Virus record (IMG/VR): IMGVR_UViG_3300024336_000005
Coordinates: 62,001-126,000 of that record
Length of the DNA: 64,000 nucleotides
Direction: 5' to 3' (one strand)
Part shown: one piece after another, positions 22,225-62,045 of the stretch
Position numbering within the stretch: the first letter of the stretch is position 1
Layout of the letters: each line of letters begins with the position of its first letter
Notes under the pieces: generated by a model
Database searches by the model: none
What the model was told of the DNA's origin: nothing
Seen by the model: only the letters and a program-made list of their open reading frames with translations
Translations under genes and position numbers: made by a program

Positions 22225-22328
22225 GGACCATTAAGCTCAAGTGGTTGCAGTCGCTGTTAAGACTCAACCCAAAGGATAGAGCTTCTTCCCCAGAGGAGAG
22301 GTTGCAGGTTCGACACCTGCATGGTTCA
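22225..22328 (+). ncRNA. tRNA-like RNA with hairpin inserted in D-loop and 6-nt anticodon loop
   Basis: acceptor GGACCAT/ATGGTTC, T-arm GCAGG-TTCGACA-CCTGC, insert 22244-22268. Confidence 0.65.
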
Positions 22329-23868: not shown

Positions 23869-24487
23869 GGGGGTGTCAGGTTTCGACAGGGTATAAATAG
23901 GAAGCGATAGCAGGTCCCGCTAAGAACGGCAGCGGGTTAGAAAGCAAGTTCAAATTGTAAACGGCAACGTAAACAACATGGCGGTGGCTGCCTGATAGCT
24001 TCCCTTCGGGGAATCTATTGGTAGTGCATACCCTCTAGTCTCTGAGTTAGACCTCTTTAAGTAAGGGCTAGAGTACGTGAAATTGAGGAATCGGACAAAG
24101 AAAAGTCCAATGTCGAGTGGATGGAAACTGAAGCTTCGTAGCTGCTTGCAGATACGAGATTGGGAACGTGGTAACACGTACAAGGATAAGCCAAACTAGT
24201 TGCGGAAGACCTCCTTGATGGTTAAGAGCTACCCGCTGACAGTAAACTCATCAAAGGAAATCGTATTACTCTTTTGATGAACCTATAAGTACGAACCTCC
24301 CTGGTTGTTTCTACCATGAGGGGAGTGAGAAAACAGAGCAAGGCGCAGCTTGGGGCCGACAGGAGTTAGCCTCAAGTGGAGTGGCAAGTGCAAATCCTCT
24401 CATTTGTTTTCATCTAAATGAAACTAAACCTGTAGAAGTTGTATTTCGAAAATGTTCTGGACGGGAGTTCAATTCTCCCCACCTCCA
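23869..24487 (+). ncRNA. ssrA: tmRNA (unusually long, 619 nt)
   Basis: 5' GGGGGTGTCAGGTTTCGAC, tag ORF 23957-23995 (A)VNGNVNNMAVAA*, 3' CTAAACCTGTAG...GGACGGGAGTTCAATTCTCCCCACCTCCA. Confidence 0.9.
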
Positions 24488-24808
24488 CATTTCTTCACGC
24501 TGAGTGGCCGTGCTGATTGACGGCGGCTGAAAGCAAACGCAATAAACTACTCGCGCGCTTGGGTTAACCAACCGGAATCAAACAGGATACTGTTCGCGCG
24601 AAATCGGTTAGCCAGCCCTAATAGGTAGTGAGCGTTTGTAGAAAGTGTCTTAGACGGTATGTCAGGGAAGGTACAACCTGGACTCCGGATAGGCGTGAGG
24701 TGGTTCAGGGTTGTAGGTAAGAGAACGGAAAAGGTAATCTGAAAACGCCTTTCTGAAACCCATAAACCTAACAAAGGGGAGCCCGAGTGGTGCAAGCAGC
24801 CCCCAGAG

Positions 24809-27768: not shown

Positions 27769-27854
27769 GCTGGTGTGGTGGAATTGGTCTTCACAGGGGA
27801 CTTAAAATCCCCCGAACTTTAATGTTCTTACGGGTTCGAGTCCCGTCTCCAGTA
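27769..27854 (+). tRNA. trnL: tRNA-Leu(UAA)
   Basis: GGGGA-CTTAAAA-TCCCC, long variable arm. Confidence 0.9.
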
Positions 27855-27867
27855 CAAAGGAAGAAGA

Positions 27868-28137
27868 ATGATTCTTGAGTCACTTGAGCAAGGGGAATAC
27901 ATTCTCTTTGTTGAGATAGACGCACAACAAGCCTTTGCAGTTGAAGGATCCTACGAAGGCCCTCAGTGAGTTCCTGTTCAGGATGGGTGGATTGCAACTA
28001 TTTATGCCCGTAAAGGGGACCTAAATATTGCCATACAAGATCATCTCGAGGCTGGAAGAAAGGCCTTCTGGGTCTCCGCCGAAGACGTGAGAGTTCCACA
28101 AATGCATGTGAAGCACACCTGGAGTGGCTTGGCATAA
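27868..28137 (+). pseudogene. small ORF interrupted by one in-frame TGA at 27967
   Basis: RBS+ATG; frame continues 55 sense codons past TGA to TAA. Confidence 0.45.
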
Positions 28138-28173
28138 TATTAAGCTGGGGGTTCGAATCCTCCCACCGGCTCC
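28121..28173 (+). other. tRNA remnant lacking anticodon arm
   Basis: GGAG/CTCC ends, GCTT..AAGC hairpin, T-arm GGGGG-TTCGAAT-CCTCC. Confidence 0.35.
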
Positions 28174-28893: not shown

Positions 28894-28985
28894 CAAGAAG
28901 TAAGCGTAAATGGTACTGCTACTGGCCTAAGGTCGAAAGACCTGAATCCGGTGTGTTGGAGGTTCGAATCCTCCCTTCTTGGCCA
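28894..28985 (+). tRNA. tRNA-like (probably Gln CUG-derived) with GAAA hairpin inserted in anticodon loop
   Basis: CAAGAAG/CTTCTTG acceptor, GCCA end, AGGTC-GAAA-GACCT in loop. Confidence 0.65.
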
Positions 28986-34784: not shown

Positions 34785-36146
34785 ATGTACCAAGCAATTG
34801 TTGCCAACATTCACACCCGTCCACATCCGGGAGCTGATCGAATTCAGCTAGGAACTGTATGTGGCCATCAGGTTGTATGCGGGCTTGACATTGCTGATGG
34901 TACTCTCGGTGTGTTCTTTCCTTGCGATGGCCAGCTAAGTCATGACTTCTGTGTGGCCAATGATGAGTACCCTCGGCTTGATGAACAGGGGAAGAAGGTC
35001 GGTGGCGGATTCATCAATCCTAAGAACCGTCGCGTAAAGGCACAAAGCTTTCGTGGTGAAAAGTCGGATGGCTACTGGGTTCCAATGGATAAGCTCATTA
35101 AGTGGGCAAATCATGTTTGGCGCGAGGATGACAAGGGAGACCATGTCCTCTTGTCCAACCGTGTGCAGAGCCTTGTAGAAGGTGACACCTTTGATTCCGT
35201 TGGCGATGTGCCTTTGTGTAACAAGTATGTAACTGAGAAGACCCTTAAGGCTCTTCAGAATCAGGCCAAGCAGGCTCGCAAGACTCATACTCAGTTCGCT
35301 CAGCATATTGATACCAAGCAGTTCCGATACAACATTGGAAACATCCCGGAGGGTTCCATTGTATGGATATCTGAAAAGCTTCACGGTACTAGCGGTCGCT
35401 ATGGGTACGTTCAAGCTCTTCGTGAGCTCGGTGGCCGTTTTAATGCTTTTGTTCGCAGGGCTTTTGATTGGTGCGCTGATAAGCTTGGTCTTGATGTAAG
35501 CCCTAAGTATGAACATGTTATGGGCTCACGAAGGGTTGAGCTCTCTGCTCAGTCAGAAGGGTTTTACGGCTCGATAGATTTCCGTGCAAATGTAGCAAAC
35601 AAGTTGAAGGGAAATCTCCTCAAGGGTGAGTGCATTTATGGAGAGCTAGTGGGTTGGACTGGTCCTGATTCTTTGATCATGGGCCGCCACTCAACCAAGA
35701 AGCTCGGCAAGGAGCTTCGCAAGCAGTACGGAGAAGAGGTCACCTATACTTATGGACAGCCAAACGGTTGTTCTGAGTTCTTCGTTTATCGAATCACTCG
35801 TGTTGGCCCAGATGGTCAGACGATTGAGCTCGGTGAGCGTGAGATGCGGGCAAGGGCGAGGGTCCTCGGCTTCAAGACTCCAGAGCTCTTTGCGGGGCCG
35901 ATGGTAGTTCACGACTATGCTGATGATAAGTGGGTCGATGGTGGCAAGACGCTCATGCAGGTCGTGGAAGCCTACCTAAATGGACCATCGATTGAAGACT
36001 CACGACATCCTCGAGAGGGCGTCGTGATTAGGGTTGACAGGCCTGACGGGACTACCATCTGGCTCAAGGACAAGAACCATCCGTTCAAGGTAATGGAGGG
36101 TATCGCTAAGGATTCCGGCGAAGCAGACATGGAAGAAAGCTCATGA
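34785..36146 (+). CDS. ATP-dependent RNA ligase, Rnl2/DRB0094-like with N-terminal OB fold
   Basis: HPGADRI, EKLHGTS (motif I), YGELVG, FFVYRI, REGVVIR, LKDKN. Confidence 0.85.
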   Translation: MYQAIVANIHTRPHPGADRIQLGTVCGHQVVCGLDIADGTLGVFFPCDGQLSHDFCVANDEYPRLDEQGKKVGGGFINPKNRRVKAQSFRGEKSDGYWVPMDKLIKWANHVWREDDKGDHVLLSNRVQSLVEGDTFDSVGDVPLCNKYVTEKTLKALQNQAKQARKTHTQFAQHIDTKQFRYNIGNIPEGSIVWISEKLHGTSGRYGYVQALRELGGRFNAFVRRAFDWCADKLGLDVSPKYEHVMGSRRVELSAQSEGFYGSIDFRANVANKLKGNLLKGECIYGELVGWTGPDSLIMGRHSTKKLGKELRKQYGEEVTYTYGQPNGCSEFFVYRITRVGPDGQTIELGEREMRARARVLGFKTPELFAGPMVVHDYADDKWVDGGKTLMQVVEAYLNGPSIEDSRHPREGVVIRVDRPDGTTIWLKDKNHPFKVMEGIAKDSGEADMEESS

Positions 36147-40772: not shown

Positions 40773-42416
40773 ATGAACTACGGTAAGACTGTTAGCAACG
40801 CTATCAACAATGGTCCAGTTTCTCAGCCTATCATCGGTAGGCCCGAGATGGTAAAGAACAGCACTGAGGGCTTTGTCTTCAACACCACTTCTGAGGCAGC
40901 GCTTGAGCGCTTCCTCATTCTTGGCACTGAAGGCGGCACTTACTATGCCAGCGAGAGCCGAGCTACAGTTGATGCGGCAAAGAATGTCATCGAGATGGCT
41001 GTTGCTGGCAACGTAGATGTAGTCAGTACCATCATCAAGGTCGCTACTGCTCGTCCCTCTCGTGCGCCAAAGATGGAGCCTTCCTTGTTTGCTCTTGCAG
41101 TTTGTACCGCAAAGGGCACCCCCGAGGTAAAAGCTAAGGCGCTCAGCGCGCTGAGCGCGGTTTGCCGTATCCCCACTCATCTGTTTACCTTTCTTCAGGC
41201 CCACAAGGATCTGGGAGGCAAGACCGGTGGGCGCAGCTTCCAGCGAGCCCTACAGAATTGGTATCTTGAGAAGGATCCCTCTAAGCTGGCTTATCAGGTT
41301 GTGAAGTATCAGGGGAGGAATGGCTGGACTCACCGTGATGTTCTTCGGCTTGCCCGCCCTAAGGCTCAGACCCCTGAGCAGAACTCTATTTTGAGTTGGG
41401 CTGTGAATGGTTCGCTGCCTCTGGCAGTAAGTTCTGAAGCGGGTGCTTATCTTGTGGCGGCGAATGAGCTGCTGCGAGGGGAGCCGACGAAGCAGCGTGC
41501 AATCAACTTGATTGAGTCTCATGGGTTCACCCATGAGATGGTTCCGACTAAGCTTCAGAAGGACCCTGATATCTGGGCAGCTTTGCTTCCCCGCATGCCT
41601 ATCAATGCAATGGTTCGCAACCTTGGTCGGATGACTGCCAATGGTCTGATTGTTCCATTCAGTGCCACAACTCAGAGCGTGGTGGAGAAGCTTGAGAATG
41701 TGGATGCCCTTCGCAAGAGCCGCATCCATCCGCTCAACGTTTACGTGGCCTTGCGTACCTATCAGCAGGGCAAGGGCACTCGAGGTTCGTTGACTTGGCG
41801 TCCTGATGCTCAGATCTTGAGCGCACTAGAAGGAGCATTCTACAATGCTTTCGGGAATGTAGAACCGACTGGTAAGCGCTTCATGGTGGGCCTGGATGTA
41901 AGCGGCAGCATGGGTGGATTCTATGGCTACGGCTATAACAGTACTGTGAACCAGACTGGCCTTATGGGGATTCCTGGGTTTACGCCTTATGAGGCAGAAA
42001 CCCTTATGTCCCTTTTGGTTGCAAAGACTGAGAAGCAGACCTTCTTTGGTGGGTTTTCAGACAACTTCACTCCCCTTGCTATCAACTCCCGTGATAACAT
42101 GAGCTCGGCTCTTCAGAAGATCCGATCACTCCGCATGGGTTCCACTAGGATTGCTGCTCCGATGGAGTATGCCACCAAGAACAGGATTCCGGTGGATTGC
42201 TTCCAGATCTACACCGACAATGAAGTGAACATGGGCGGACATCCTTGTCAGACCCTTGAGAAGTATCGTCAGGCTACTGGCATCAATGCGGCCATGGTCG
42301 TATGCGCTATGACCTCTACGAATTTCACTGTGGCCGACCCGAAGGATCCGAAGCAGCTTGATGTTGTTGGATTTGACACGGCAGTGCCAGCTTTGATTCG
42401 ACAGCTTTTGGTGTAA
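40773..42416 (+). CDS. rsr: Ro60/Rsr TROVE-domain RNA-binding protein
   Basis: LERFLILGTEGGTYY, KYQGRNGWTHRDVLRLARP, VRNLGRMT, IHP, vWA MIDAS DVSGSM, YTDNE, DVVGFD. Confidence 0.97.
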   Translation: MNYGKTVSNAINNGPVSQPIIGRPEMVKNSTEGFVFNTTSEAALERFLILGTEGGTYYASESRATVDAAKNVIEMAVAGNVDVVSTIIKVATARPSRAPKMEPSLFALAVCTAKGTPEVKAKALSALSAVCRIPTHLFTFLQAHKDLGGKTGGRSFQRALQNWYLEKDPSKLAYQVVKYQGRNGWTHRDVLRLARPKAQTPEQNSILSWAVNGSLPLAVSSEAGAYLVAANELLRGEPTKQRAINLIESHGFTHEMVPTKLQKDPDIWAALLPRMPINAMVRNLGRMTANGLIVPFSATTQSVVEKLENVDALRKSRIHPLNVYVALRTYQQGKGTRGSLTWRPDAQILSALEGAFYNAFGNVEPTGKRFMVGLDVSGSMGGFYGYGYNSTVNQTGLMGIPGFTPYEAETLMSLLVAKTEKQTFFGGFSDNFTPLAINSRDNMSSALQKIRSLRMGSTRIAAPMEYATKNRIPVDCFQIYTDNEVNMGGHPCQTLEKYRQATGINAAMVVCAMTSTNFTVADPKDPKQLDVVGFDTAVPALIRQLLV

Positions 42417-43090: not shown

Positions 43091-43816
43091 ATGAAAATAC
43101 AATATGTAAGTGATGTTCACACTGAATTTCACAAAGATTTGGGAATTCAGTGGGCTAAAACGATTCCTGTTGAAGGGGATGTTTTAGTTCTTGCTGGTGA
43201 TATTGTTATTTTCGAGAACCTCATTCAGGTCTTGACAATCATTTGTAATCGCTTTTCGAAGGTGGTATTTGTTAGCGGCAATCATGAGTATTACCGTTCA
43301 GATCGTAAAACGATTCATAACAAACTGCAAAAGATTGCAAATAAGTTTGACAATTTCCATCATTTAAATAATAATGTAGTTGTCATTGAGGATATACGCT
43401 TCGTCGGTACGACACTTTGGTGGAGCGCCCCTCCTTATGCTTGGCTAGCCATCATGAATGGCTTGAACGACTTTAGTCAGATACTTGGGTATCGCAAATG
43501 GGTCAGCCAGGCAAACATAAAAGCCAAACAGTTTCTACAAGAGAATGTGCGAGAAGGTGATATTGTTATCACCCATCATGCACCAACTTGGGAGGCGCAC
43601 CGACGGCGACAGTTGGGTAATGGAGTAATGCATTTTGCTTATTACAACAACTTAGATGATTTGATCCTTGATAACAAACCAAAATATTGGATTTATGGAC
43701 ACACGCACCATGAAGATCAATTTTCTATAGGGGATACACTTTTAGTGAATTCCCCGCATGATTATTGTCCTTATGAGGGCGGTTGGCCGAAGAAATTCGG
43801 CCTTTTAGATGTCTAG
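43091..43816 (+). CDS. metallophosphoesterase
   Basis: SDVH, LAGDI, GNHE, THHAP, YGHTH; AT-rich. Confidence 0.88.
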   Translation: MKIQYVSDVHTEFHKDLGIQWAKTIPVEGDVLVLAGDIVIFENLIQVLTIICNRFSKVVFVSGNHEYYRSDRKTIHNKLQKIANKFDNFHHLNNNVVVIEDIRFVGTTLWWSAPPYAWLAIMNGLNDFSQILGYRKWVSQANIKAKQFLQENVREGDIVITHHAPTWEAHRRRQLGNGVMHFAYYNNLDDLILDNKPKYWIYGHTHHEDQFSIGDTLLVNSPHDYCPYEGGWPKKFGLLDV

Positions 43817-43923
43817 AAGGGTAGGCTGTTTTAAGCCGAGGGCAGACCCGTTAAGGGTCTCGCGAGCTAAGGAGGCGGAAGGGCCTTAGCTGATAGAGGT
43901 GAATCATTAGAACGACCTCTTAT

Positions 43924-44012
43924 GCCAGATGATGACCTAATTGGATAGGCGACACACTGTGAATGTGTTTGGCGAAAGCCTTTAGCGGGTTCGAATCCCG
44001 TCATTTGGCCCA
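43924..44012 (+). tRNA. trnH: tRNA-His(GUG) with long variable arm
   Basis: G-1:C73, ACACA-CTGTGAA-TGTGT, GGC-GAAA-GCC extra arm, CCA. Confidence 0.88.
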
Positions 44013-44013
44013 T

Positions 44014-44100
44014 ATGAACTGAAGTGATTTCTTTATTACAAACCATTTAAGTTGGGTAACGGCGTTGTGGCACCCATTAGAAGTTACACTATTTGTTCAT
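44014..44100 (+). ncRNA. putative Y RNA 2
   Basis: ATGAACTGA / TTGTTCAT; starts right after tRNA CCA. Confidence 0.7.
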
Positions 44101-44103
44101 TTT

Positions 44104-44174
44104 GCTATTGTTTCTAGGTGAGAGGCCTGTGTGGTATACAGGTCAACAGGGTTCGATTCCCTGCAGTAGCACCA
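44104..44174 (+). tRNA. trnT: tRNA-Thr(GGU), short D arm
   Basis: GCTATTG/CAGTAGC, CCTGT-GTGGTAT-ACAGG, ACCA. Confidence 0.7.
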
Positions 44175-44250
44175 TAAGGGCGTGCACCGGGACTCATACT
44201 CCCCTTTAAAACCCTTAAGGTTAGTGAGATCTGATCACCTCGCTGGCTCT

Positions 44251-44324
44251 GAGACCCTAGTCTAATGGTAGGGCAGCGGATTGCAACCCCGCTAATTCCG
44301 GTTCAAGTCCGGAGGGTTTCTCCA
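44251..44324 (+). tRNA. trnC: tRNA-Cys(GCA)
   Basis: GCGGA-TTGCAAC-CCCGC, U73, CCA. Confidence 0.9.
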
Positions 44325-44379
44325 GATGTTACTAGCATCACCTGAGTCTCGACATGGCGTCAACTAGTCGAGGCTCTAC

Positions 44380-44455
44380 GGCCTTATAGGATAATGGCTA
44401 ATCCACCCGATTCTCATTCGGGATATGGCGGGTTCGACTCCCCCTAAGGTCACCA
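44380..44455 (+). tRNA. trnE: tRNA-Glu(CUC)
   Basis: CCCGA-TTCTCAT-TCGGG, ACCA. Confidence 0.88.
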
Positions 44456-44456
44456 T

Positions 44457-44523
44457 ACGAACTGAAGATATTACGTTACCAAACTGTTAATTTGCTCATG
44501 CGTAATTTCAACCATTTGTTCGT
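44457..44523 (+). ncRNA. putative Y RNA 3 (minimal, carries an Asn-type anticodon loop)
   Basis: ACGAACTGA / TTGTTCGT; CAAA-CTGTTAA-TTTG. Confidence 0.7.
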
Positions 44524-44528
44524 TTTAA

Positions 44529-44602
44529 GGCAGTACACCACGGGCTGGTAGGTGCGGTTCATATTCGTCATCGCAAGGGTTCGAGTCCCTTTGCTGCTAC
44601 CA
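44529..44602 (+). tRNA. degenerate tRNA, probable CAU anticodon
   Basis: GGCAGTA/TGCTGCT acceptor, T-arm, ACCA; weak D and anticodon stems. Confidence 0.5.
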
Positions 44603-44641
44603 CTGACTAGGGTGAGGTCATCAATTTGAAAGACAGGACGA

Positions 44642-44908
44642 ATGCATCCTTTTAGAAAACATCTAGAGATAGAAACTACAAAATCAGGTTCTCTGATTTC
44701 TGTCTATGGACAACCTTCTTGGGTGCAACTTTTCTTTCTTTACATAGATGCTATGGATAAGATGGGACATTCTTTTTACAGAGACTCATCCTTCTACAAA
44801 GAGAGGCTAGAGCTTCTAATCAGAACGGGAAGGTCCAATCGAATTCGTATATGTTGCAGGACGCTTAATAAGCGTTCTAAAAAGCTTCTAAAAGAGATAG
44901 TTGATTAG
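44642..44908 (+). CDS. hypothetical protein
   Basis: ORF. Confidence 0.6.
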   Translation: MHPFRKHLEIETTKSGSLISVYGQPSWVQLFFLYIDAMDKMGHSFYRDSSFYKERLELLIRTGRSNRIRICCRTLNKRSKKLLKEIVD

Positions 44909-44916
44909 AGGAACAA

Positions 44917-45204
44917 ATGGCTTGCAAGATTTGTGGATACAGAAAGAATGTGGCCTTTGGATGCTACGGTCACGAAGAAGAGGCTAAAGTAGAAGAGCCA
45001 AAGGCTGCCGCTTCTTTTGAAATGATGGTTGTAAGCTATCAGTTGGATCGTGGATATGGCCAAGGCTGGGAGAAGCTTTTCACTTGTGCTGACAACAAGA
45101 ATCTTGCTGGTGATTGGCGTGTAACGCCTAATGAATATGGGCATTGGCCGGCTTCGCAGATGCAGAAGCATATGAGAAATGAGGGCCTTCCCCTCTCCGA
45201 TTGA
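44917..45204 (+). CDS. hypothetical protein
   Basis: RBS, ORF. Confidence 0.75.
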   Translation: MACKICGYRKNVAFGCYGHEEEAKVEEPKAAASFEMMVVSYQLDRGYGQGWEKLFTCADNKNLAGDWRVTPNEYGHWPASQMQKHMRNEGLPLSD

Positions 45205-45306
45205 AGATCATAACTGAAGATTCAGTCTTTGTTTGTAAGGCTCCCTACACCGAATGGGAAGACACTGGCAAGATTCCTTTCTGAAGTCTTATGAGAGAGA
45301 GTTAAA

Positions 45307-45693
45307 ATGACTATTGGTTATGTTATCGCCTGGGCTTTATTTTATGTAATGTGTTCAACTCCTTTCCTCTTTGCTGTGGTTTCATCTAGTGGAAAGCAAA
45401 TTGATGCCTTCATTGAGACAAAAGCACATTGGCCAACATGGCTATATGCGTCTTTTTGCTTTTTCATCTGGAGTGGAGTCTTTTTGCTTTCCCCTCTGAT
45501 CGCACTTGTTTTGGGGATTTTCTATTCGACAAAAGGACTAAAGATCTCCTATCGAGAAAGAGAAGTCGAACGGCAGTACATTCTTAAGAAAAGGGAGAGG
45601 ATGACAAAGCTTCAAAAGCGTTCTGGTGGCAGTCTCTCCCTCTCTAAAAACCGACAGCAGGGCATGCTTTCTAAAATTCCTATAGAAAAGTGA
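45307..45693 (+). CDS. membrane protein
   Basis: TM segments. Confidence 0.7.
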   Translation: MTIGYVIAWALFYVMCSTPFLFAVVSSSGKQIDAFIETKAHWPTWLYASFCFFIWSGVFLLSPLIALVLGIFYSTKGLKISYREREVERQYILKKRERMTKLQKRSGGSLSLSKNRQQGMLSKIPIEK

Positions 45694-45810
45694 AAAAGTG
45701 CCCAAAAATATTGTTGGGTTTTAGAAAAAGGATTTTTCAAAAATGACGCTATGGTTCCTTGGGTTTATTACCGGCGCCGGCGCCGGCCTTCTCGGCCATT
45801 CGATTTTAAC

Positions 45811-46122
45811 ATGGAAAAAGTAGCAGACCTTTGGAGGTTGATCCTCCACATTTGGGACTGGCTGAGAGTGAGCCTTAGGGCTCACGCAGAGAAGTTGATC
45901 CTAATTGTTATGTTTGTTCTTCTTGGTCTCATTGCTTGGGACTATTGGAACGATGAGATTGTAGTGAAACACACAGTTGATCTGTGTGCTCAAGAGGGGA
46001 ATCTTGGTTATCCCGACGAATGTGAATGCATCATCATGCAAGCACTTCTGCAAGAGGATGATCATGCAATGAAGAGACTCTTGGGCAAAGCAGGAGAGTG
46101 TAGGACTCTTCTGGGCGAGTAA
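45811..46122 (+). CDS. membrane-anchored protein
   Basis: start corrected to ATG 45811. Confidence 0.6.
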   Translation: MEKVADLWRLILHIWDWLRVSLRAHAEKLILIVMFVLLGLIAWDYWNDEIVVKHTVDLCAQEGNLGYPDECECIIMQALLQEDDHAMKRLLGKAGECRTLLGE

Positions 46123-46125
46123 AAT

Positions 46126-46165
46126 ACGGCAGTGGTGTAATGGTAGCACGAGGGATTCCAAACCT
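46126..46165 (+). pseudogene. 5' half of split tRNA-Trp(CCA)
   Basis: ACGGCAG..AGGGA-TTCCAAA-CC; pairs 7/7 with CTGCCGT at 46849-46855. Confidence 0.85.
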
Positions 46166-46172
46166 GTTGCAT

Positions 46173-46244
46173 ACGCCCTTAGCCAAATGGTAAGGCAGCG
46201 GATTCCAAACCCGTGATTTGTAGGTTCGATCCCTACAGGGCGTG
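46173..46244 (+). tRNA. trnW: tRNA-Trp(CCA), intact copy inside the split gene
   Basis: ACGCCCT/AGGGCGT, GCGGA-TTCCAAA-CCCGT, G73. Confidence 0.93.
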
Positions 46245-46246
46245 CA

Positions 46247-46795
46247 TTATTTAAAGGGGCCATCTTGATTTAGATAGTGATCAACTTGATGACAGGTAGG
46301 ACAAAGAATTTCTAAGTTCTCAATAGAACTATCAAGCTTATCTCTATTTTTATGATGAACCTGTAATACATTTGGATACTCACTCCATCCACATTGTGCA
46401 CAAACAAGTTTAAGTTGCTCAAAAGCAATGGCCCTGTATCCACCTTTTATATATCTACCATTTTTGTAGTTGCTTCCTTTGGAGCCTGATCTAAAAAAGG
46501 TGTTAGCACAGCTTCTGCTACAAACAGTCTTTTCTTTTGGATGTCCTTTAAGAGTCTCAAATTCCTTTAGGCATTGTGGGCATTCTTTTAATACTGTCTG
46601 ATACTTCCTTCTAGGATTTTTCCAATGAGAAATATCTAAAGCCTCTTTTGAAATTCTTGAACGCAGAGCCTGATAAGGCGCATTGTCTATTCCAAGAATT
46701 TCAAATAATTCCTTTCCGCAGGAAGCTGTTTCTACTGCTGCAGCGAAAGATTTAGTCGAATATAACCAGATTCTTGATTTCTTTTTGTGGTTCAT
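46247..46795 (-). CDS. HNH homing endonuclease (antisense, AT-rich)
   Basis: CPQC..CSRSC Zn finger; CAQCG..LQVHHKNRDK..NLEILCPTCH. Confidence 0.9.
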   Translation of the reverse strand: MNHKKKSRIWLYSTKSFAAAVETASCGKELFEILGIDNAPYQALRSRISKEALDISHWKNPRRKYQTVLKECPQCLKEFETLKGHPKEKTVCSRSCANTFFRSGSKGSNYKNGRYIKGGYRAIAFEQLKLVCAQCGWSEYPNVLQVHHKNRDKLDSSIENLEILCPTCHQVDHYLNQDGPFK

Positions 46796-46827
46796 GCATA
46801 CCTCCTAAGGACACAATAACAAAGATT

Positions 46828-46856
46828 CGGTCAGGGTTCAAGTCCTTGCTGCCGTG
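46828..46856 (+). pseudogene. 3' half of split tRNA-Trp
   Basis: CAGGG-TTCAAGT-CCTTG T-arm, CTGCCGT-G acceptor strand. Confidence 0.85.
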
Positions 46857-46878
46857 CAAAATGAAAGAAGAAAACAAC

Positions 46879-47130
46879 ATGCAAGCACATCACTATTTGA
46901 GAGATCACTTCATTCGCAACAATGCCCTCTCTCGTTCTGAAACTCCCTATGGACCTTATAGGGGCTATGTTACTGGTACGTCAGTCTATGATAAGGCTAG
47001 CGGCAATGTGACAGTAGAAGATATTAAGATCCTGAATGGGATTTCCTTTGGGCAAGCAACAGCTGTTAGAATCTGCAAGGAGAATCCTAACCGTATTCTC
47101 ATCAAGTACACTTGTGATTCGACAGACTGA
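46879..47130 (+). CDS. hypothetical protein
   Basis: start corrected. Confidence 0.65.
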   Translation: MQAHHYLRDHFIRNNALSRSETPYGPYRGYVTGTSVYDKASGNVTVEDIKILNGISFGQATAVRICKENPNRILIKYTCDSTD

Positions 47131-47312
47131 TGAATGTTAACGATGTAGTTACAGTAAAGGCAGGTCCTAATAAGACCCCTTATGAATGTCTTGTAAGGTA
47201 TATTTATCCTAATGAAGATGTCCTCTTGGAGCTTCCTAATTTTCTGGGGAACAACCTTAGGTATCAACGTTGGAATAAGTCCTTAAAGAAGTATCGGTCC
47301 GCAAGGACCTAA
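47130..47312 (+). CDS. hypothetical protein
   Basis: TGATG coupling. Confidence 0.65.
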   Translation: MNVNDVVTVKAGPNKTPYECLVRYIYPNEDVLLELPNFLGNNLRYQRWNKSLKKYRSART

Positions 47313-47318
47313 AGATTT

Positions 47319-47493
47319 ATTGAACTGAAGAGATCTAGGTTATCACTATAAAGGCTCGGCCCTCTTAACAGAGGTTTGCAGGTTCGAATCCTGTCGATCC
47401 GAAAGGATCGTGGCGAAATGGTAAACGCACCGAATATAAGTACCGGGGACCTTGAAAGAGGAATCCAATCTCCTAACTCGTCCCTTGTTCAAT
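47319..47493 (+). ncRNA. putative Y RNA 4, YrlA-type with permuted tRNA domain
   Basis: ATTGAACTGA/TTGTTCAAT; T-arm GCAGG-TTCGAAT-CCTGT, CGATCC-GAAA-GGATCG, D-arm GCG-AAATGGTAAA-CGC. Confidence 0.85.
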
Positions 47494-47498
47494 GATTT

Positions 47499-47583
47499 GG
47501 CTCTCAGGTTCCACGGTGGGACAACCGGCTGTAAACCGGTCGCGTTAAATCGCTACTAGGTTCGATTCCTAGGGGAGCCACCA
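47499..47583 (+). tRNA. trnY: tRNA-Tyr(GUA)
   Basis: ACCGG-CTGTAAA-CCGGT, variable arm, ACCA; extended D stem. Confidence 0.88.
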
Positions 47584-47584
47584 C

Positions 47585-47737
47585 GAAAGTCTGGTAGCAG
47601 TTCAGGATGTTTCCCTTAAGGCTCCTGGAGTGGGTGCAACTCCTATACTTTCATTAGAGGAGCTTATAGCCTGCAGGCTTGTAAGAGCGACAGTGTGGCC
47701 ACACTGTGATAGGGTTTGAGTCCCTGTGCCTCTGCCA
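47585..47737 (+). other. two degenerate tRNA-like elements (about 47585-47651 and 47656-47737)
   Basis: acceptor-like ends and T-like arms (GTGGG-TGCAACT-CCTAT; TAGGG-TTTGAGT-CCCTG, GCCA) but no canonical anticodon arm. Confidence 0.4.
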
Positions 47738-47740
47738 CAA

Positions 47741-47774
47741 TCGGAAGTAGTCTAATTGGCAAAACAGGGGCCTC
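47741..47774 (+). pseudogene. 5' half of a split tRNA (identity uncertain, possibly Gln)
   Basis: TCGGAAG-TA-GTCTAATTGGC; pairs 7/7 with CTTCCGA at 48652-48658. Confidence 0.8.
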
Positions 47775-47777
47775 GTG

Positions 47778-48488
47778 CTACTTGAGCCATTTGCGAATAG
47801 CATTATCAGTAACTCCGTAATGTCTTCCTGTTTTAGAATATCCCCATAGCTTTATTTGATCCAATAGAACTTCCTTGGAGGGTCTATTCAAAACCTTACG
47901 TCTTGAGTGGTCTGCCTGCCTTGCACAAGATCTACACCTAGCGGCTGTTGCTGAAATTTTTTCTTGACAGTCTTGACAATGATTTTGCTTCTTTTTGTGC
48001 GAAACATTTCGTCCAGCAAAGGTGGCCGTCTGGCTATTGCAATTAGGACAAAGAAAGCGCAAATTCTCTAATCTATGATCATTATTAATTCCATTGATGT
48101 GATCAAGAATTAATACAAGTAATTCTTCATTCCAAATATTGTTTTGCTTGCACAAGAGGCATTCATAAGGAATTACGCCCTCTTTTAGGATGCGTTGCTT
48201 AAGAGTGCCACGGCTGTAGGATGAATTCTTAATCATGTATTCCTCAAGGGGCTTGCCTCTTGAGGATGAAACCAGCCTTCTTGCTTCATTGTTTGTAAGA
48301 TCAATCCTAATTAATTCTTCTTGTAGGCAATATTTAATTGCTAATTCCTTTAGGATTCTGTATGTAGACCCACAGCGATTGGCAATGTTTAGGATCTCTA
48401 AAGCCTGGGCTCTCGATTCTGCTTGTTGTATTGCAGAAATAAATTCTATTTTGGGGACTTTATACAGGGGATGACTTTTCTTTCTCAT
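47778..48488 (-). CDS. HNH homing endonuclease (antisense, AT-rich)
   Basis: LILDHINGINNDHRLENLRFLCPNCNSQ; start set at MRKKSH with AGGAG RBS. Confidence 0.9.
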   Translation of the reverse strand: MRKKSHPLYKVPKIEFISAIQQAESRAQALEILNIANRCGSTYRILKELAIKYCLQEELIRIDLTNNEARRLVSSSRGKPLEEYMIKNSSYSRGTLKQRILKEGVIPYECLLCKQNNIWNEELLVLILDHINGINNDHRLENLRFLCPNCNSQTATFAGRNVSHKKKQNHCQDCQEKISATAARCRSCARQADHSRRKVLNRPSKEVLLDQIKLWGYSKTGRHYGVTDNAIRKWLK

Positions 48489-48500
48489 GATACTCCTTGA

Positions 48501-48583
48501 TCGGGGGTGATGAAACTGGCATATATGCTCGACTCTGAATCGAGTGCTTCGGCGTGAGGGTTCGAATCCCTCCTCCCGATCCA
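48501..48583 (+). tRNA. tRNA with CUG (Gln) anticodon on a class II (Leu/Ser-like) body
   Basis: CTCGA-CTCTGAA-TCGAG, variable arm TGCTTCGGCGT, U73, CCA. Confidence 0.85.
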
Positions 48584-48596
48584 ATGCATATTTGTT

Positions 48597-48625
48597 ATTA
48601 TATGGCAAAGTACAAATAATAGCAA
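48597..48625 (-). promoter_or_regulatory. sigma70-type promoter for antisense HNH
   Basis: TTGCTA-17bp-TATAAT on minus strand. Confidence 0.7.
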
Positions 48626-48630
48626 TATAT

Positions 48631-48662
48631 GTTTGCAGGTTCAAGTCCTGCCTTCCGAACCA
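48631..48662 (+). pseudogene. 3' half of split tRNA
   Basis: GCAGG-TTCAAGT-CCTGC, CTTCCGA-A-CCA. Confidence 0.8.
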
Positions 48663-48675
48663 TTAAGGAGATAAG

Positions 48676-48906
48676 ATGGATGCCTTAAGGGCGATCAAAG
48701 AGCATCAGTGGACGATTGAGCGCAAAGATAGTGACGTTCTGATAAGCATCCAAGGTAATCTGTCGTCAGATCACTTTGGTGATCTTAAGGACATGATTGA
48801 TGAGTTTTTGAGAGAGAAGTGTGAATGTGAGTCTTGTCAGGCTCCTGTTTATCTTTCAATGGAACTCTGTTCCCGATGCCATGTCTCTGAATATGGGCCA
48901 GCATAG
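48676..48906 (+). CDS. hypothetical protein
   Basis: AAGGAG RBS. Confidence 0.7.
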   Translation: MDALRAIKEHQWTIERKDSDVLISIQGNLSSDHFGDLKDMIDEFLREKCECESCQAPVYLSMELCSRCHVSEYGPA

Positions 48907-49055
48907 GCCCACAAAGATGGAGCTTCATCTAACCAATAGAGCCTGAACAATGATTACACTCGCATAGAGTGTTCACAGGCATGTGGCAACAAGGTAAATA
49001 CAGTATCCTGAATGAAACCTGTAGCAAATGATGAATACGCTACAAAACTGTATAT

Positions 49056-49131
49056 GGGAAGCTAACTCAATTGGCAGAGTAACGGGCTCTTACCCCGTAG
49101 GTTCTCGGTTCGAATCCGAGGCTTCCCACCA
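49056..49131 (+). tRNA. trnK: tRNA-Lys(CUU)
   Basis: ACGGG-CTCTTAC-CCCGT, ACCA. Confidence 0.93.
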
Positions 49132-49132
49132 T

Positions 49133-49250
49133 TTGAACTGAAGGATATTGGTTATCTTTTCTGAACAAAAACGTGCTGGGTTCGATTCCCAGGGGTTCCA
49201 TAAGGGGCCCGCAGGCGCCTAGTAAACTTCCGATTCCACCCCTTGTTCAA
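49133..49250 (+). ncRNA. putative Y RNA 5, YrlA-type
   Basis: TTGAACTGA/TTGTTCAA; T-arm CTGGG-TTCGATT-CCCAG then closed stem GGGTTCC-ATAA-GGGGCCC. Confidence 0.8.
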
Positions 49251-49451
49251 TTCATTCTAAAAGTTCCTATACAAATCTCAAAAAAGTCAGAAAAATATTT
49301 TGGGCTTTTGAAAAGATCTTTTCACCGTTCGAAAGGTGAAAAGGAACGCCTTAATCTAGCTACAACGAGTGGTTGTTTCAGTTCATCCCATCTCAATAGT
49401 TAGTTGCTGTCTCTAAATCAACTGAATAAAAGCAGCAAAGATTAAGGTCAT

Positions 49452-49525
49452 CGAGGTGCGCGCGCCTGGGCTGTGCGAGAGGATTGTCTATCCTCTGTGG
49501 GCGGGTTCGATTCCCGTCACCTCGG
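49452..49525 (+). tRNA. trnD: tRNA-Asp(GUC), atypical D arm
   Basis: CGAGGTG/CACCTCG, GAGGA-TTGTCTA-TCCTC, G73. Confidence 0.8.
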
Positions 49526-49686
49526 CACCCTTACTCCCAGATGGGAGGAGGAATAGTACGAGTTCACGTGGTATTTACACTACGATTATAACCTCTCCGT
49601 TTAAAATACTCCCTGAACTCGTAGTGACAAGTGTGAGTGGGACGCCACGCCTGAATGTATTCGACGGTTTACATTCAGCAACTTGT

Positions 49687-49763
49687 GGGGGAATCGTCAA
49701 GTGGTTTAAGACACCTGCTTTACACGCAGGCATGCGCAGGTTCGACTCCTGCTTCCCCTACCA
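49687..49763 (+). tRNA. trnV: tRNA-Val(UAC)
   Basis: CCTGC-TTTACAC-GCAGG, ACCA. Confidence 0.92.
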
Positions 49764-49985
49764 ATACTTTACGTTAAGTAGATCCCATACTGCATGATCC
49801 AGTGTGGCTCAAGCTGTACACTTGAGATAGGTGGTATTGCACCATCAAGCCTGAATACAAGGCAGGTCATAACTATATCTTCCCTGCCGTTGGCGGTCAG
49901 TCATCAACCTCTAAGAATGCCAGGAGGTCGGAAGAAAGTGGAACTGAACGGTGTGATGTTCCAGCTATTTCTTTAAGGAGGAAGA

Positions 49986-50189
49986 ATGAGTGGTAAGATA
50001 ACTAAGAGTGCATATGTTCAGCTAATAAAAGAAAATATTGCATGGTTAAAGACCATGCCTAGGACCCTAGAGCGAAACCATATTATGCTTATAGTTGAAA
50101 AGTCTATTGACTTTTACTACCCCACTTCCCATCCCCATTTTGAAAGTGTTCAACCTCATGGCAAGTTGGGCACAGGATCTTTAGATTAG
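49986..50189 (+). CDS. small hypothetical protein (3' end overlaps HNH tail)
   Basis: AGGAGG RBS. Confidence 0.7.
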   Translation: MSGKITKSAYVQLIKENIAWLKTMPRTLERNHIMLIVEKSIDFYYPTSHPHFESVQPHGKLGTGSLD

Positions 50190-50628
50190 ATAAAGAACTA
50201 TTTGCTCTGTCACGATCTTTATGGTGGACATGAAGAACCTCTGGCACTTGGTTGAAGCCACATTCAGAGCACTGATGGGGCAAATGCTTGAAAGCTAACT
50301 TGCGATACTCTACTCCTCCCTTCCAAGAGCCATGATTTTCATTGCTTCGGAAATGGGTATTAGAACATCCGTAAGAGCAGGTTGTTGTTTCTTTTGGGTG
50401 TCCCTTTAGTGTTTCAAATTCTTTTGAGCATACAGGGCATTCCTTAGTTACCTTAAGATATTTTCTTCTATCTCTAGAGCTTTTGTACCTATCGAAATGA
50501 GAGGTGTCAAAAGGCTCGCAATCTTTTTTAGCCTTTCTTGTTCCAGATCCATTTAATGGATATCCGATATATCTACAAATATCTGAATAAGAATTGAAGG
50601 TACTGATAAGGTTTTGTGTAAGTTTCAT
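50104..50628 (-). CDS. HNH homing endonuclease, paralog of 46247-46795
   Basis: shared KEFETLKGHPKE..CS and HH.(N/D)RD...NL.ILCPTCH. Confidence 0.9.
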   Translation of the reverse strand: MKLTQNLISTFNSYSDICRYIGYPLNGSGTRKAKKDCEPFDTSHFDRYKSSRDRRKYLKVTKECPVCSKEFETLKGHPKETTTCSYGCSNTHFRSNENHGSWKGGVEYRKLAFKHLPHQCSECGFNQVPEVLHVHHKDRDRANSSLSNLKILCPTCHEVEHFQNGDGKWGSKSQ

Positions 50629-50640
50629 TTTTTCTCCTAT

Positions 50641-50719
50641 CTGCGCGTAGCTCAGTCTGGTTTAGAGTAACCGCCTTGGAAGCGGTAAGTCGTTGGTTCA
50701 AATCCAACCGTGCAGACCA
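50641..50719 (+). tRNA. trnP: tRNA-Pro(UGG)
   Basis: ACCGC-CTTGGAA-GCGGT, ACCA. Confidence 0.93.
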
Positions 50720-50737
50720 AAATATTCAATATTCCTT

Positions 50738-50765
50738 ATTATAACACAGACTTTTGTCTTGTCAA
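50738..50765 (-). promoter_or_regulatory. consensus sigma70 promoter for antisense HNH
   Basis: TTGACA-16bp-TATAAT with TG extended -10 on minus strand. Confidence 0.8.
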
Positions 50766-50780
50766 TAAGATTTGAATTAA

Positions 50781-50868
50781 CTAGCGAGCGGGCGGTGGAC
50801 GCCCAACCGTGCTGTACAGCGGTGGTGCTTTGATGCACAACTGGGTTCGATTCCTAGGCGCTAGACCA
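50781..50868 (+). tRNA. Tyr-like class II tRNA with 8-nt anticodon loop
   Basis: ACCGT-GCTGTACA-GCGGT, GTGC..GCAC arm, 5-bp D stem, ACCA. Confidence 0.65.
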
Positions 50869-50975
50869 CTGAAGAAGGAATCAAGAATGGATTGGGTCCC
50901 GTCTGAAATAGAAAATTACGTCCTAAAGGCAATGTATGGCCAAGAATTCTTCTATTGGCATCAAGAGGCAAAGAA

Positions 50976-51272
50976 ATGAAGCAAACCCTTATTGAATCCT
51001 TCCCTACAATTAAAGAGATGGAAGAAAAAGAGAAGAAGCGACAGATGGAGGCAAGCCAAGCAGTAGCGAACTATTGCACAAGGATTGGGAATCTCTTAAG
51101 AGATAAAGATGGATTTCCCCCCTACAGGATTGCTGAGCCAGCATTCCGAATCTCACCCGCTGTCCCCGTGAATCTTGCTCTTGTGTGGTTGAATGCCAAT
51201 ACGGAGTGGACGGTAACATTTGAAGCCGGAGATCGCGGGCGTGGGCACTATGTGTTCACTTTTCAGGAATAG
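50976..51272 (+). CDS. hypothetical protein
   Basis: ORF. Confidence 0.7.
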   Translation: MKQTLIESFPTIKEMEEKEKKRQMEASQAVANYCTRIGNLLRDKDGFPPYRIAEPAFRISPAVPVNLALVWLNANTEWTVTFEAGDRGRGHYVFTFQE

Positions 51273-52038: not shown

Positions 52039-52121
52039 GTGCCCTTTGGCGGAATGGTAGACGCACGTAATGGTCCCCTCCGGCTTAGAGGGGTGCAGGT
52101 TCGACTCCTGTAAGGGTGCCA
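52039..52121 (+). ncRNA. tRNA-like RNA lacking a normal anticodon arm
   Basis: acceptor, Leu-type D arm and T arm present; only CGTAATGGT then CCCCTC-CGGCTTA-GAGGGG. Confidence 0.6.
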
Positions 52122-54378: not shown

Positions 54379-54598
54379 GAGGACAATCTAAGATTTAATC
54401 TTAGACTAAACGTCACTGACATCTAGGTTCGAATCCTAGGCCCGCAACCATGTGCCTGCGCGATGCATCATAAGCAGCTCTTCAATGGGGGAGTGGTGGG
54501 TGAAAGTCCCATGGCACAACATAATGCGGGTTGGCGAAACTGGTATACGCGGGGACTTGTCCCTGTCAGACATGACACTTAAGCTTAAGCTATTCCTC
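54379..54598 (+). ncRNA. circularly permuted tRNA-like RNA on a long stem
   Basis: T-arm + GCCCGCA-ACCA precede TGCGGGT + D-arm; closed by CTGACA/TGTCAG and GAGGA/TCCTC. Confidence 0.8.
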
Positions 54599-59164: not shown

Positions 59165-59297
59165 TCTGGTGTCGCTTAATGGTAGAGCAGGCGGCTGTGG
59201 TTTATTGCAAGGGCATTACAAGGGTCTTAACCTTGGTAGGCCTCATAACCGCCCGGGGGAAACTCCATTGTAGGTTCGACTCCTACCACCAGAGCCA
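59165..59297 (+). tRNA. interrupted tRNA (Asn-like) with 47-nt insert in anticodon loop and long variable arm
   Basis: TCTGGTG/CACCAGA, G73, CCA; GGCGG-CTGT[59199-59245]TAA-CCGCC. Confidence 0.75.
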
Positions 59298-60491: not shown

Positions 60492-62045
60492 ATGGGATCA
60501 TCTAACGTTACGTGTGGTATTACTCATGCTTCAATTGGTGGAGGAGATGAGTGTGTATTAATTCCTCTTCATGCTTCGAAGAAGCCTGAAGATCCTTTTA
60601 ATTATACTCCTTATGCAGCACTCCCTGTTGTTATCCGAGGTAGGTATGATGACTACGGAAGGATTGAGGACATCGTAGAGACTGCAGGCACTAAGGTTCT
60701 TGAAAAAGAATTTGGGATGCCTATTAAGAGGTTTGCAGACCTCCTCGTTGAGGGGAGAGATGATTACATTGGTGAGTTTGGTACACTGATGAGCCCAGAT
60801 CTTGTGGACCTATTGAAAGACTATAGTCCCTTTGATCAGGAGCATCTCAAAGCTTGCGGCTTTGAGCCTTATGAGCTAGACCGAGAGGCTTACCTTTCGC
60901 CTGAGCTGGTAGACCAGGAGAGCTGGTGGAGTCATCCCCGATTGGAAAAGATTCTTGTACGCCTTAGGTCTTGGGTCTCCGGAGGGGAAACGCTGCCAGA
61001 AAAACTATGGAACAGTTACCAGATTTCCTCACCCTGGCGCAACCATGAAGACGAACGTCCCTGCTTGACCAGTCTAACGATTGCTTGGGAGAGTGGTCAT
61101 AAGGTGATGGGACTTCTTAACAACTTGTATCAAAATACAGGCATCCATCTGGCCTATAAGGAGAAGAACTCTGGTGTTTTTCATAGGCTGAATGAGATGG
61201 ACTACGTTTGGGTACATGCAACAGCCTTTGATGGACTTTCTAAGCCCCTCCCACATGAGGGGCAGGGGGGCTCCTGGTGGGGCGAAGACAGTTGGATCAG
61301 TGGAATTAAGCCTGACAGCTTAGAGATGCTCGGCTTTGTTTATGACAAAGAAGCCTCTGAAAAGAGAAGGGCTGTCAAGCCCAAGGGGCCGACGGAAAAG
61401 CATCGTTGGTGGATGATCTATCGTCATCCTGAATGTACAACGCATGTTGCTGTAAGCGATGGCAGATGGAGTCACATCATTGAAGAGGGTGATAACACCT
61501 ATCATGGCACGATGAACCTATTCAGCCTTAGGCTTACTCAATTTGTTCAGGCATGGAAGAAGGCTACAAAGAAACGCCTTGTTGTTCCTAAGGAAGAATA
61601 TTCTCTCTGTTCTTATAGAAAGAACTTCCGTCACGCTCGCGCTGCCGTCTTAGCCTTTGAAAAGGACCAGGCAGAGGAGCTTGAATTTTACGAAAGCTCT
61701 GGCCTTGATGAACAAGCCATCGCTCTTAAGAGAATGAGGGCGGAGTATAACAGCATCTGGAGACGCGATAACATTCGAGAGTATCCTTCAATTTCCTTCG
61801 AGCCAGAGTGGCCACGTTGGTCATTCATGAAGGACTTGTTTGCTGGTGTGATTAAGGATGGCACCCTCGAAGATGAGTGTGTGCAACTACAGTGGCTGCG
61901 AGCGAACCTTGGGATGCTCGCACATCCTCTTAGGCCGATGCCCTATAATGGACCTCAGTGTGGTGACTACCACATGCTTAAGGCCTTTGGTGATATCATT
62001 GTAGAGATTGCAGAAGACAAGCTAAAAGAAAGAGATGACTGGTAA
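60492..62045 (+). CDS. hypothetical protein
   Basis: 517-codon ORF. Confidence 0.85.
   Translation: MGSSNVTCGITHASIGGGDECVLIPLHASKKPEDPFNYTPYAALPVVIRGRYDDYGRIEDIVETAGTKVLEKEFGMPIKRFADLLVEGRDDYIGEFGTLMSPDLVDLLKDYSPFDQEHLKACGFEPYELDREAYLSPELVDQESWWSHPRLEKILVRLRSWVSGGETLPEKLWNSYQISSPWRNHEDERPCLTSLTIAWESGHKVMGLLNNLYQNTGIHLAYKEKNSGVFHRLNEMDYVWVHATAFDGLSKPLPHEGQGGSWWGEDSWISGIKPDSLEMLGFVYDKEASEKRRAVKPKGPTEKHRWWMIYRHPECTTHVAVSDGRWSHIIEEGDNTYHGTMNLFSLRLTQFVQAWKKATKKRLVVPKEEYSLCSYRKNFRHARAAVLAFEKDQAEELEFYESSGLDEQAIALKRMRAEYNSIWRRDNIREYPSISFEPEWPRWSFMKDLFAGVIKDGTLEDECVQLQWLRANLGMLAHPLRPMPYNGPQCGDYHMLKAFGDIIVEIAEDKLKERDDW

Follow-up and report, generated by a model that had tools for sequence, protein, structure and literature searches.

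A tRNA-Trp gene broken around an HNH endonuclease gene and a second tRNA-Trp gene in a marine phage: a probable homing cassette with a same-isotype tRNA

Free-standing homing endonucleases are known from the tRNA clusters of phages, where they drag tRNA genes along, and HNH genes have been loosely implicated in the diversity of tRNA repertoires (PMC5966550, PMC6409571, PMC7589089). Here we report on a locus in a stretch of 64,000 nucleotides (the window hereafter, positions 62,001 to 126,000) of IMGVR_UViG_3300024336_000005, a 204-kb uncultivated viral contig of a marine phage that carries at least 26 tRNA genes, all of them on the plus strand. At 46126-46856 of the window, a tRNA-Trp(CCA) gene (the outer tRNA) is split into two pieces, between which lie an intact and divergent tRNA-Trp(CCA) gene (the cargo tRNA) and, in antisense orientation, the gene of an HNH endonuclease termed HNH#1. 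This arrangement is probably a free-standing HNH homing-endonuclease cassette with a same-isotype tRNA as its cargo, lodged within the gene that it targets, tRNA-Trp. A description of such a nested layout of a tRNA gene and an HNH gene was not found in the literature searched. The coordinates of the features are collected in Table 1.

[quoted passage not shown] The Trp cassette resembles this system in possessing a free-standing nuclease gene within a phage tRNA cluster and tRNA genes as hitch-hikers. However, SegB belongs to a different nuclease family than HNH#1, its gene is intergenic and the tRNAs of the recipient are replaced by co-conversion. Neither a broken target around the element nor a dedicated cargo of the same isotype is present in T4, whereas the Trp cassette has both. 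In its tRNA region, phage T5 encodes the hegA-type HNH endonucleases F-TflI/II/IV (Akulenko 2004, as cited in PMC2330249). Like these, HNH#2, the endonuclease of a second nested locus in the window, is an HNH enzyme in a tRNA cluster, and its sequence homologues are annotated as hegA/F-TflIV in GenBank. HNH#1 itself is a distant relative of these enzymes, with 27% identity to HNH#2, and the literature searched contains no description of an interrupted tRNA gene or a carried replacement for the T5 enzymes.

Insertions of endonuclease genes that split protein genes are known from T4 mobA with gene 60 and from mobE of Aeromonas phage Aeh1, which splits nrdA, and in these cases function is rescued by subunit reassembly or translational bypass. 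They resemble the Trp locus in that a free-standing endonuclease gene sits in its target gene, the function of which is rescued otherwise. While the target is a protein gene there, the Trp locus comprises an RNA gene that appears to be left dead and a carried paralogue that would rescue it. Separated tRNA half genes with complementary acceptor strands, as they occur at the Trp locus, are also found in Nanoarchaeum equitans (see also PMC4090602). The halves of this archaeon have flanks that can pair with each other, and they are united by the splicing endonuclease of archaea and a ligase; neither such flanks nor the features of this splicing machinery are present at the Trp locus.

The 5' piece of the outer tRNA-Trp consists, from 46126 onwards, of the acceptor strand ACGGCAG, TG, the D arm GTGT/AATGGTA/GCAC, G, AGGGA, the anticodon loop TTCCAAA and CCTGT, and ends at about 46167-46169. 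The initial annotation had recognized the start and the identity of this piece and had ended it slightly too early, at 46165. The 3' piece, (GT) CAGGG TTCAAGT CCTTG CTGCCGT G, lies practically where it had been placed (46828-46856), and the outer halves do pair at all seven acceptor positions (ACGGCAG/CTGCCGT), as had been claimed. A join of 46169 to 46830 results in a cloverleaf of 71-72 nt that is called as tRNA-Trp(CCA) by ARAGORN, with 7/7 pairs in the acceptor stem, 4/4 in the D stem, 5/5 in the T stem and 3/5 in the anticodon stem. In IMG/VR, intact tRNA-Trp genes of phages have D and T arms that agree with the outer ones in every letter and a variable loop that reads TTGT, so that the break can be assigned to the variable loop. 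As a control for chance, the outer 3' piece was combined with each of the 127,912 possible 44-nt 5' segments of the window and subjected to ARAGORN. A tRNA was called from the segment start in 49 cases, grouped in a few dozen places; among the 40 matches listed, most places are genuine tRNA 5' halves and Trp(CCA) was called only at 46125/46126. We regard it as confirmed that 46126-46169 and 46830-46856 are two pieces of one former tRNA-Trp(CCA) gene.

The cargo tRNA begins five nucleotides past the outer 5' piece and represents the sole intact tRNA-Trp gene within the window. An intact, divergent tRNA-Trp had been expected inside the insert at 46173-46244, and its end was found one nucleotide further, at 46245. 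Like the outer tRNA-Trp, the cargo possesses A1-U72 and G73, and both genes share 52 matches in a gapped global alignment (outer gene 71-72 nt). In one seawater metatranscriptome contig (run X1), position 46206 reads T for C, which would change the CCA anticodon of the cargo to CTA, that is, to an amber-suppressor anticodon; this contig is a single one with a depth of 4.4 of 9. A signal of stop-codon recoding in the phage was not seen.

The antisense open reading frame (ORF) of HNH#1 has its stop codon 2 nt beyond the Rfam end of the cargo tRNA, in agreement with the initial annotation, and its product scores above the Pfam cut-off for HNH (PF01844, 23.6 bits, cut-off 21.4) and matches 12 PHROG HNH families. 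HNH#1 comprises an N-terminal helical region, a Cys-rich middle and a C-terminal beta-beta-alpha-metal core, and H148, N160, H169 and H173 as well as four Cys pairs are invariant in the alignment of its clade (A1). In an AlphaFold2 (AF2) model, the pLDDT exceeds 90 over residues 120-180, which form the C-terminal nuclease domain, and the top HNH match of this model in Foldseek is the Gme HNH nicking endonuclease 4h9d (probability 0.97, E 0.2). In a search of solved structures, the single sequence of HNH#1 had no match, and with the profile IscB and McrA were matched weakly in their HNH domains. Taken from sequence and model, HNH#1 is intact and has the predicted core and the predicted catalytic and zinc residues of an HNH (His-Me finger) endonuclease.

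The initial annotation had further proposed a minus-strand promoter of HNH#1 that borrows its -35 element from the T loop of the remnant. The string TTGAAC-17-TATTGT does exist on the minus strand, yet it scores 8/12, which is under the threshold of the promoter scan, and promoter-like sites are not enriched in the region (4 seen versus 5.6 expected from shuffles), so that the string amounts to a weak promoter candidate. The T loop of the Gln remnant of the second nested locus gives a similar TTGAAC-17-TATTAT (48644-48616) with an extended -10, which is a better match than the Trp one. The locus also contains a 15-nt direct repeat with 12/15 (80%) identical positions, 46168-46182 (TGCATACGCCCTTAG) and 46795-46809 (TGCATACCTCCTAAG). 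The former copy reaches across the left junction into the beginning of the cargo tRNA, and the latter covers the start codon and the ribosome-binding site of HNH#1.

A group I intron can be rejected for the Trp locus: the break lies in the variable loop, the insert comprises a whole tRNA and an antisense ORF, and there is no ribozyme match. Neither Intron_gpI nor any other ribozyme was detected in 43500-51000 (E<=1) and in L062 (E<=0.1). As HNH#1 is antisense to the tRNA pieces and Intron_gpI does not match, the element is intron-less, as originally claimed, and HNH#1 is free-standing. An integrase footprint was rejected as well. In this explanation, a site-specific integrase with tRNA genes as its targets would have left a duplicated stretch of the tRNA at either end of an island, for which the partial tRNA on each side and the role of tRNA genes as classic integration sites could be adduced. 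However, the 660-bp insert and its vicinity encode no integrase, the pieces on the two sides complement each other as halves of a single gene and are not direct repeats of the same segment, the inner tRNA differs from them in sequence, and an att-like duplication is missing, the sole notable repeat being the one of 15 nt at 80%. We thus regard an integrase footprint as extremely improbable.

The layout of a tRNA broken around an HNH gene and a divergent tRNA with the same anticodon, which the initial annotation had read from the Trp locus, recurs at three further loci for Gln, Pro and Thr. The Gln locus (47741-48662) is situated 900 bp downstream of the Trp locus. Here, CTTCCGA of the 3' piece pairs 7/7 with TCGGAAG of the 5' piece; the latter stops in the anticodon loop, and the anticodon arm of the outer Gln-like tRNA is short by about 10-14 nt. 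Both the remnant and the cargo show U1-A72, which we take to be a mark of the Gln type. The protein search with HNH#1 yielded few relatives, and the best of them (43% identity) is encoded on an unrelated metagenome contig of 1.4 kb (L009), in the order 5' part of a tRNA-Pro(TGG), HNH, intact different tRNA-Pro(TGG) and 3' remnant, with 7/7 acceptor pairing. An automatic search for orphan halves at 80 IMG/VR loci of the clade revealed the fourth case, L079/L080, the HNH of which is 39% identical to HNH#1. There, an intact different tRNA-Thr(TGT) and then the HNH, on the same strand, stand between the 5' and the 3' part of a tRNA-Thr(TGT); the variable loop is again the site of the break, and the joined Thr halves are called as a tRNA by ARAGORN. 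At all four independent nested loci (4/4), the isotype of the enclosed tRNA is that of the broken one, i.e. Trp, Gln-like, Pro and Thr, which is unlikely by chance since neighbours in tRNA arrays share their isotype at a rate of 16% (about 0.16^4). A paralogue of HNH#1, HNH#3, adjoins a tRNA-Pro(TGG), and the closest metagenomic relative of HNH#1 is, as described, nested in a tRNA-Pro; outer tRNA remnants were not seen at the HNH#3/tRNA-Pro(TGG) locus (50104-50719).

Table 1. Positions of the features discussed, given for the window unless a different record is named.
Feature	Position	Strand	Description or basis
5' piece of outer tRNA-Trp(CCA)	46126..46169	+	acceptor strand, D arm, anticodon arm, 1-2 nt of variable loop
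Cargo (inner) tRNA-Trp(CCA), intact	46173..46245	+	ARAGORN; Rfam tRNA 59.8 bits
HNH#1, 182 aa, free-standing HNH endonuclease	46247..46795	-	Pfam, PHROG, alignment, AF2
Shine-Dalgarno AGGAGG	46802..46807	-	6 nt upstream of HNH#1 start codon; read from sequence
Promoter-like TTGAAC-17-TATTGT	46841-46813	-	first hexamer is antisense of remnant Trp T loop
3' piece of outer tRNA-Trp	~46830..46856	+	variable-loop end, T arm, acceptor strand CTGCCGT, discriminator G
5' piece of second disrupted tRNA (Gln-like, U1...A72)	47741..~47777	+	TCGGAAG, D arm, anticodon stem 5' strand, ends at ~nt 34
HNH#2, 239 aa, hegA/F-TflIV homologue (T5-type tRNA-region endonuclease)	47778..48497	-	PHROG 10822 E 9e-36; tblastn, GenBank annotation
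Cargo tRNA-Gln(CTG), intact	48501..48583	+	ARAGORN; Rfam 43.4 bits
3' piece of outer Gln-like tRNA	48635..48662	+	T arm GCAGG TTCAAGT CCTGC, CTTCCGA, ACCA
HNH#3, paralogue of HNH#1 (52% identity)	50104..50628	-	starts 12 nt from tRNA-Pro(TGG) 50641-50719
Intact tRNA-Gln(TTG), example	L145, UTI-EfS3 OL870611, 696-769		

The sister loci also bear on the question whether the outer tRNA might still function as a split tRNA, the pieces of which pair via the acceptor stem and are joined as RNA, e.g. by the RNA ligase that the phage encodes at 34785-36146. The near completeness of the Trp pieces, their 7/7 pairing and the Ro60 protein that the window encodes in addition to this RNA ligase would be compatible with such a function. 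However, no complementary leader and trailer and no bulge-helix-bulge motif were found beside the pieces, 46168-46172 shows no complementarity to 46796-46829, a group I intron is absent and the anticodon stem of the outer tRNA has defects. Essential nucleotides are missing from the remnants of the Gln and Pro loci, which hence cannot be functional. In two seawater metatranscriptome assemblies the locus is colinear and no joints were seen, which is weak evidence as the contigs are of low depth, do not show the strand and could miss rare RNAs. A split functional tRNA was rejected on the grounds of the missing complementary flanks, the missing bulge-helix-bulge and the defective sister remnants, and we consider it very improbable.

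To place HNH#1 among its relatives, IMG/VR was scanned with the clade alignment, which resulted in 80 loci with 58 distinct ORFs. The clade of HNH#1 is tied to tRNA genes: tRNAs are located within 1.5 kb in 62 of the 80 loci, and 35 of the 58 distinct ORFs lie at most 30 nt from a called tRNA, most commonly Ala(TGC) or Leu(TAA). Several loci that had looked tRNA-less proved to be tRNA-Leu(UAA) genes in which U34 is followed by a group I intron that harbors the HNH ORF. Such introns, of about 775-1000 nt, are present in L121, L122, L124, L127 and L140, and the exon junctions are canonical; a partial Rfam Intron_gpI match of 33 bits was obtained for L127. As they are seated in introns of tRNA-Leu(UAA), these members of the clade target tRNA genes by definition. 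The introns thus share with the Trp locus an HNH of the same broad clade and the interruption of a tRNA gene, and their target is the uninterrupted allele. In contrast, the intron restores its tRNA by splicing, whereas at the Trp locus a second gene would do so, a ribozyme is absent, the HNH is antisense and the break lies in the variable loop.

An empty site is available for the HNH#2 branch. The best cultured relative of HNH#2 is the product of hegA of Enterococcus phage vB_OCPT_Bop (ON125307), with 40% identity over the full length. Directly before this hegA lies the 5' piece of a tRNA-Gln and directly after it an orphan T arm (L143, 1395-2220), while more than 20 Schiekvirus phages that are ~99% identical on both sides lack hegA and possess an intact tRNA-Gln(TTG) at that exact place. 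According to the alignment, ~14 nt of the tRNA-Gln anticodon stem-loop are replaced in Bop by ~765 bp comprising a promoter and hegA. Phage 113 (L146, MZ147816) carries the same hegA insertion in tRNA-Gln, so that Bop and 113 on the one hand and the more than 20 Schiekvirus phages on the other represent a presence/absence polymorphism of the HNH#2 clade. At the level of aligned genomes, this is direct evidence that endonucleases of the hegA/HNH#2 kind insert into tRNA genes. Within this Gln branch, Bop and the window have their insertions in corresponding parts of the tRNA. Phage 113 has, in addition, another HNH gene in place of most of the neighbouring tRNA-Ser(GCT), and the broken tRNAs of Bop and 113 are unannotated in their GenBank records. 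The Schiekvirus phages of Enterococcus with and without hegA in tRNA-Gln constitute a laboratory system for homing into a tRNA gene.

Against this background a further explanation of the Trp locus has to be weighed, namely a one-off illegitimate recombination in which a fragment with a tRNA-Trp and an HNH gene was caught in a break of the resident tRNA-Trp. The HNH would then not be specific to tRNA-Trp, and the agreement in isotype would result from the clustering of isoacceptors, same-isotype neighbours making up 16% in arrays already. The Gln and Pro junctions, with their small deletions, would fit such an event, as would the Trp junctions, which show no homology besides the 15-nt 80% repeat that is not located at both of them, the insertion without cargo in Enterococcus and the failure to find a relative of the phage in the collections searched. 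Yet a single accident would have to account for an isotype match at each of four independent loci, for related HNHs at every one of them and for the tight association of the clade with tRNAs, including members encoded in introns, and the 99%-identical empty and filled Schiekvirus alleles look like a recent, repeatable insertion. We therefore judge a one-off capture to be unlikely.

Under the preferred explanation of a homing cassette, HNH gene and tRNA-Trp of a previous genome would have been copied together, as a cassette of ~660 bp, into the variable loop of the resident tRNA-Trp, which would have become two dead pieces. Because this split would destroy the presumed recognition site, the locus could not be cut again. 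The cargo tRNA would be processed from the plus-strand transcript of the tRNA cluster and supply the Trp tRNA function, while HNH#1 would be read from the opposite strand, with a weak promoter and a Shine-Dalgarno sequence of its own. When a cell is co-infected, the enzyme would be expected to cut the uninterrupted tRNA-Trp of the other phage; the cassette would then be copied during repair, for which both tRNA pieces and the DNA around them would provide the homology arms. We infer from the arrangement that the target cut by HNH#1 is the uninterrupted tRNA-Trp gene of the outer type; to judge from the aligned genes, the cargo would resist cleavage through its differences, especially in the variable loop and T arm. 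The initial annotation had proposed such a resistant cargo and an element that would stay neutral by carrying it. The homing step itself, with the pieces as arms, is likewise proposed from the layout of the locus.

Several observations weigh against this explanation. The initial annotation had proposed to look for related phages with the uninterrupted tRNA-Trp, and neither an uninterrupted outer allele nor a close relative of the phage was found in the public phage, viral, metagenome and genome collections searched. This search comprised megablast/blastn against phages, patterns matched exactly or with gaps in collections of viruses, metagenomes and genomes, and both flanking small ORFs, and it returned only the source contig or unrelated phage tRNAs; searches for empty alleles of the Thr and Pro sister loci found none either. 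All 24 locus-carrying contigs that were read show the same arrangement, and because the five that were compared over 43247-49795 are identical, there is no population polymorphism at the Trp locus. The hegA insertion of Bop and 113 persists without any cargo tRNA, which means that a cargo is not obligatory for persistence. At the Gln and Pro junctions, 4-14 nt are missing, with which a single imprecise insertion or subsequent erosion would be as compatible as precise homing. The tRNAs that flank clade HNHs share their isotype in 6/30 cases compared to 25/155 for array neighbours, which is not significant (permutation P 0.065). Finally, the outer anticodon stem pairs at just three of five positions, and the unusual anticodon arm GGATTCCAAACC.GT (T32, A31.C39 mismatch) is common to the outer and the inner Trp gene. 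Both arms are the same at 15/17 positions and other phage tRNA-Trp genes lack such an arm, so that the two genes are not fully independent; the common arm hints at gene conversion between outer and cargo gene or at a shared constraint.

The window contains further unusual tRNA-like elements. At 27769-28170, a tRNA-Leu(TAA) has a 5' acceptor strand, GCTGGTG, that pairs 7/7 with an orphan T arm and acceptor 290 nt downstream (28147-28170) compared to 6/7 with the 3' end annotated for this tRNA; the stretch in between contains no nuclease gene, and the arrangement may be an older replacement of a 3' half. Another orphan T arm, followed by GCCCGCA and ACCA, is found at 54423-54449 without a 5' partner. 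At 59165-59294, a tRNA with an Rfam score of 42.2 bits and without an ARAGORN call folds as an extended cloverleaf in which a 53-nt insertion replaces the normal anticodon loop and the variable arm is long. The tRNA-like gene at 28894-28982, which is at the Rfam threshold (29.5 bits), has a 22-nt anticodon loop holding the hairpin AGGTC GAAA GACCT, and the tRNA at 50781-50868 has an anticodon loop of 8 nt read as 'tgta' by ARAGORN. Two tRNA-like genes with aberrant middle parts lie at 52040-52118 and 22225-22327. A phage transfer-messenger RNA (tmRNA) at 23869-24490 (Rfam 83.5 bits) was missed by ARAGORN and may hold an insertion, its length being 622 nt versus 374 positions of the model. Two copies of a tRNA-like element (~47318-47497 and ~49133-49270), which are neither called by ARAGORN nor matched by Rfam, share a terminal stem TTGAAC...GTTCAA around a T arm, a closed hairpin resembling an acceptor, CGATCC GAAA GGATCG, and a D-arm-like segment. 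They resemble bacterial Y RNAs of the YrlA type, and a Ro60/TROVE protein is encoded at 40773-42416.

New in comparison to the described systems is the footprint of a target tRNA that is broken around an endonuclease gene which brings a replacement of the same isotype, a footprint present at four loci. It is conceivable, though we put this forward as a tentative view that may well prove too broad, that such cassettes form a distinct and widespread selfish class which homes into tRNA genes, kills the target and substitutes a copy immune to cleavage, in the manner of an 'intron without splicing', and which is a main driver of the turnover and diversification of phage tRNA repertoires. If general, this mode of insertion would explain how the tRNA sets of phages are overwritten without loss of function and why orphan tRNA halves litter phage tRNA clusters, and it would suggest that an endonuclease can invade an RNA gene intolerant of insertions without the aid of a ribozyme.

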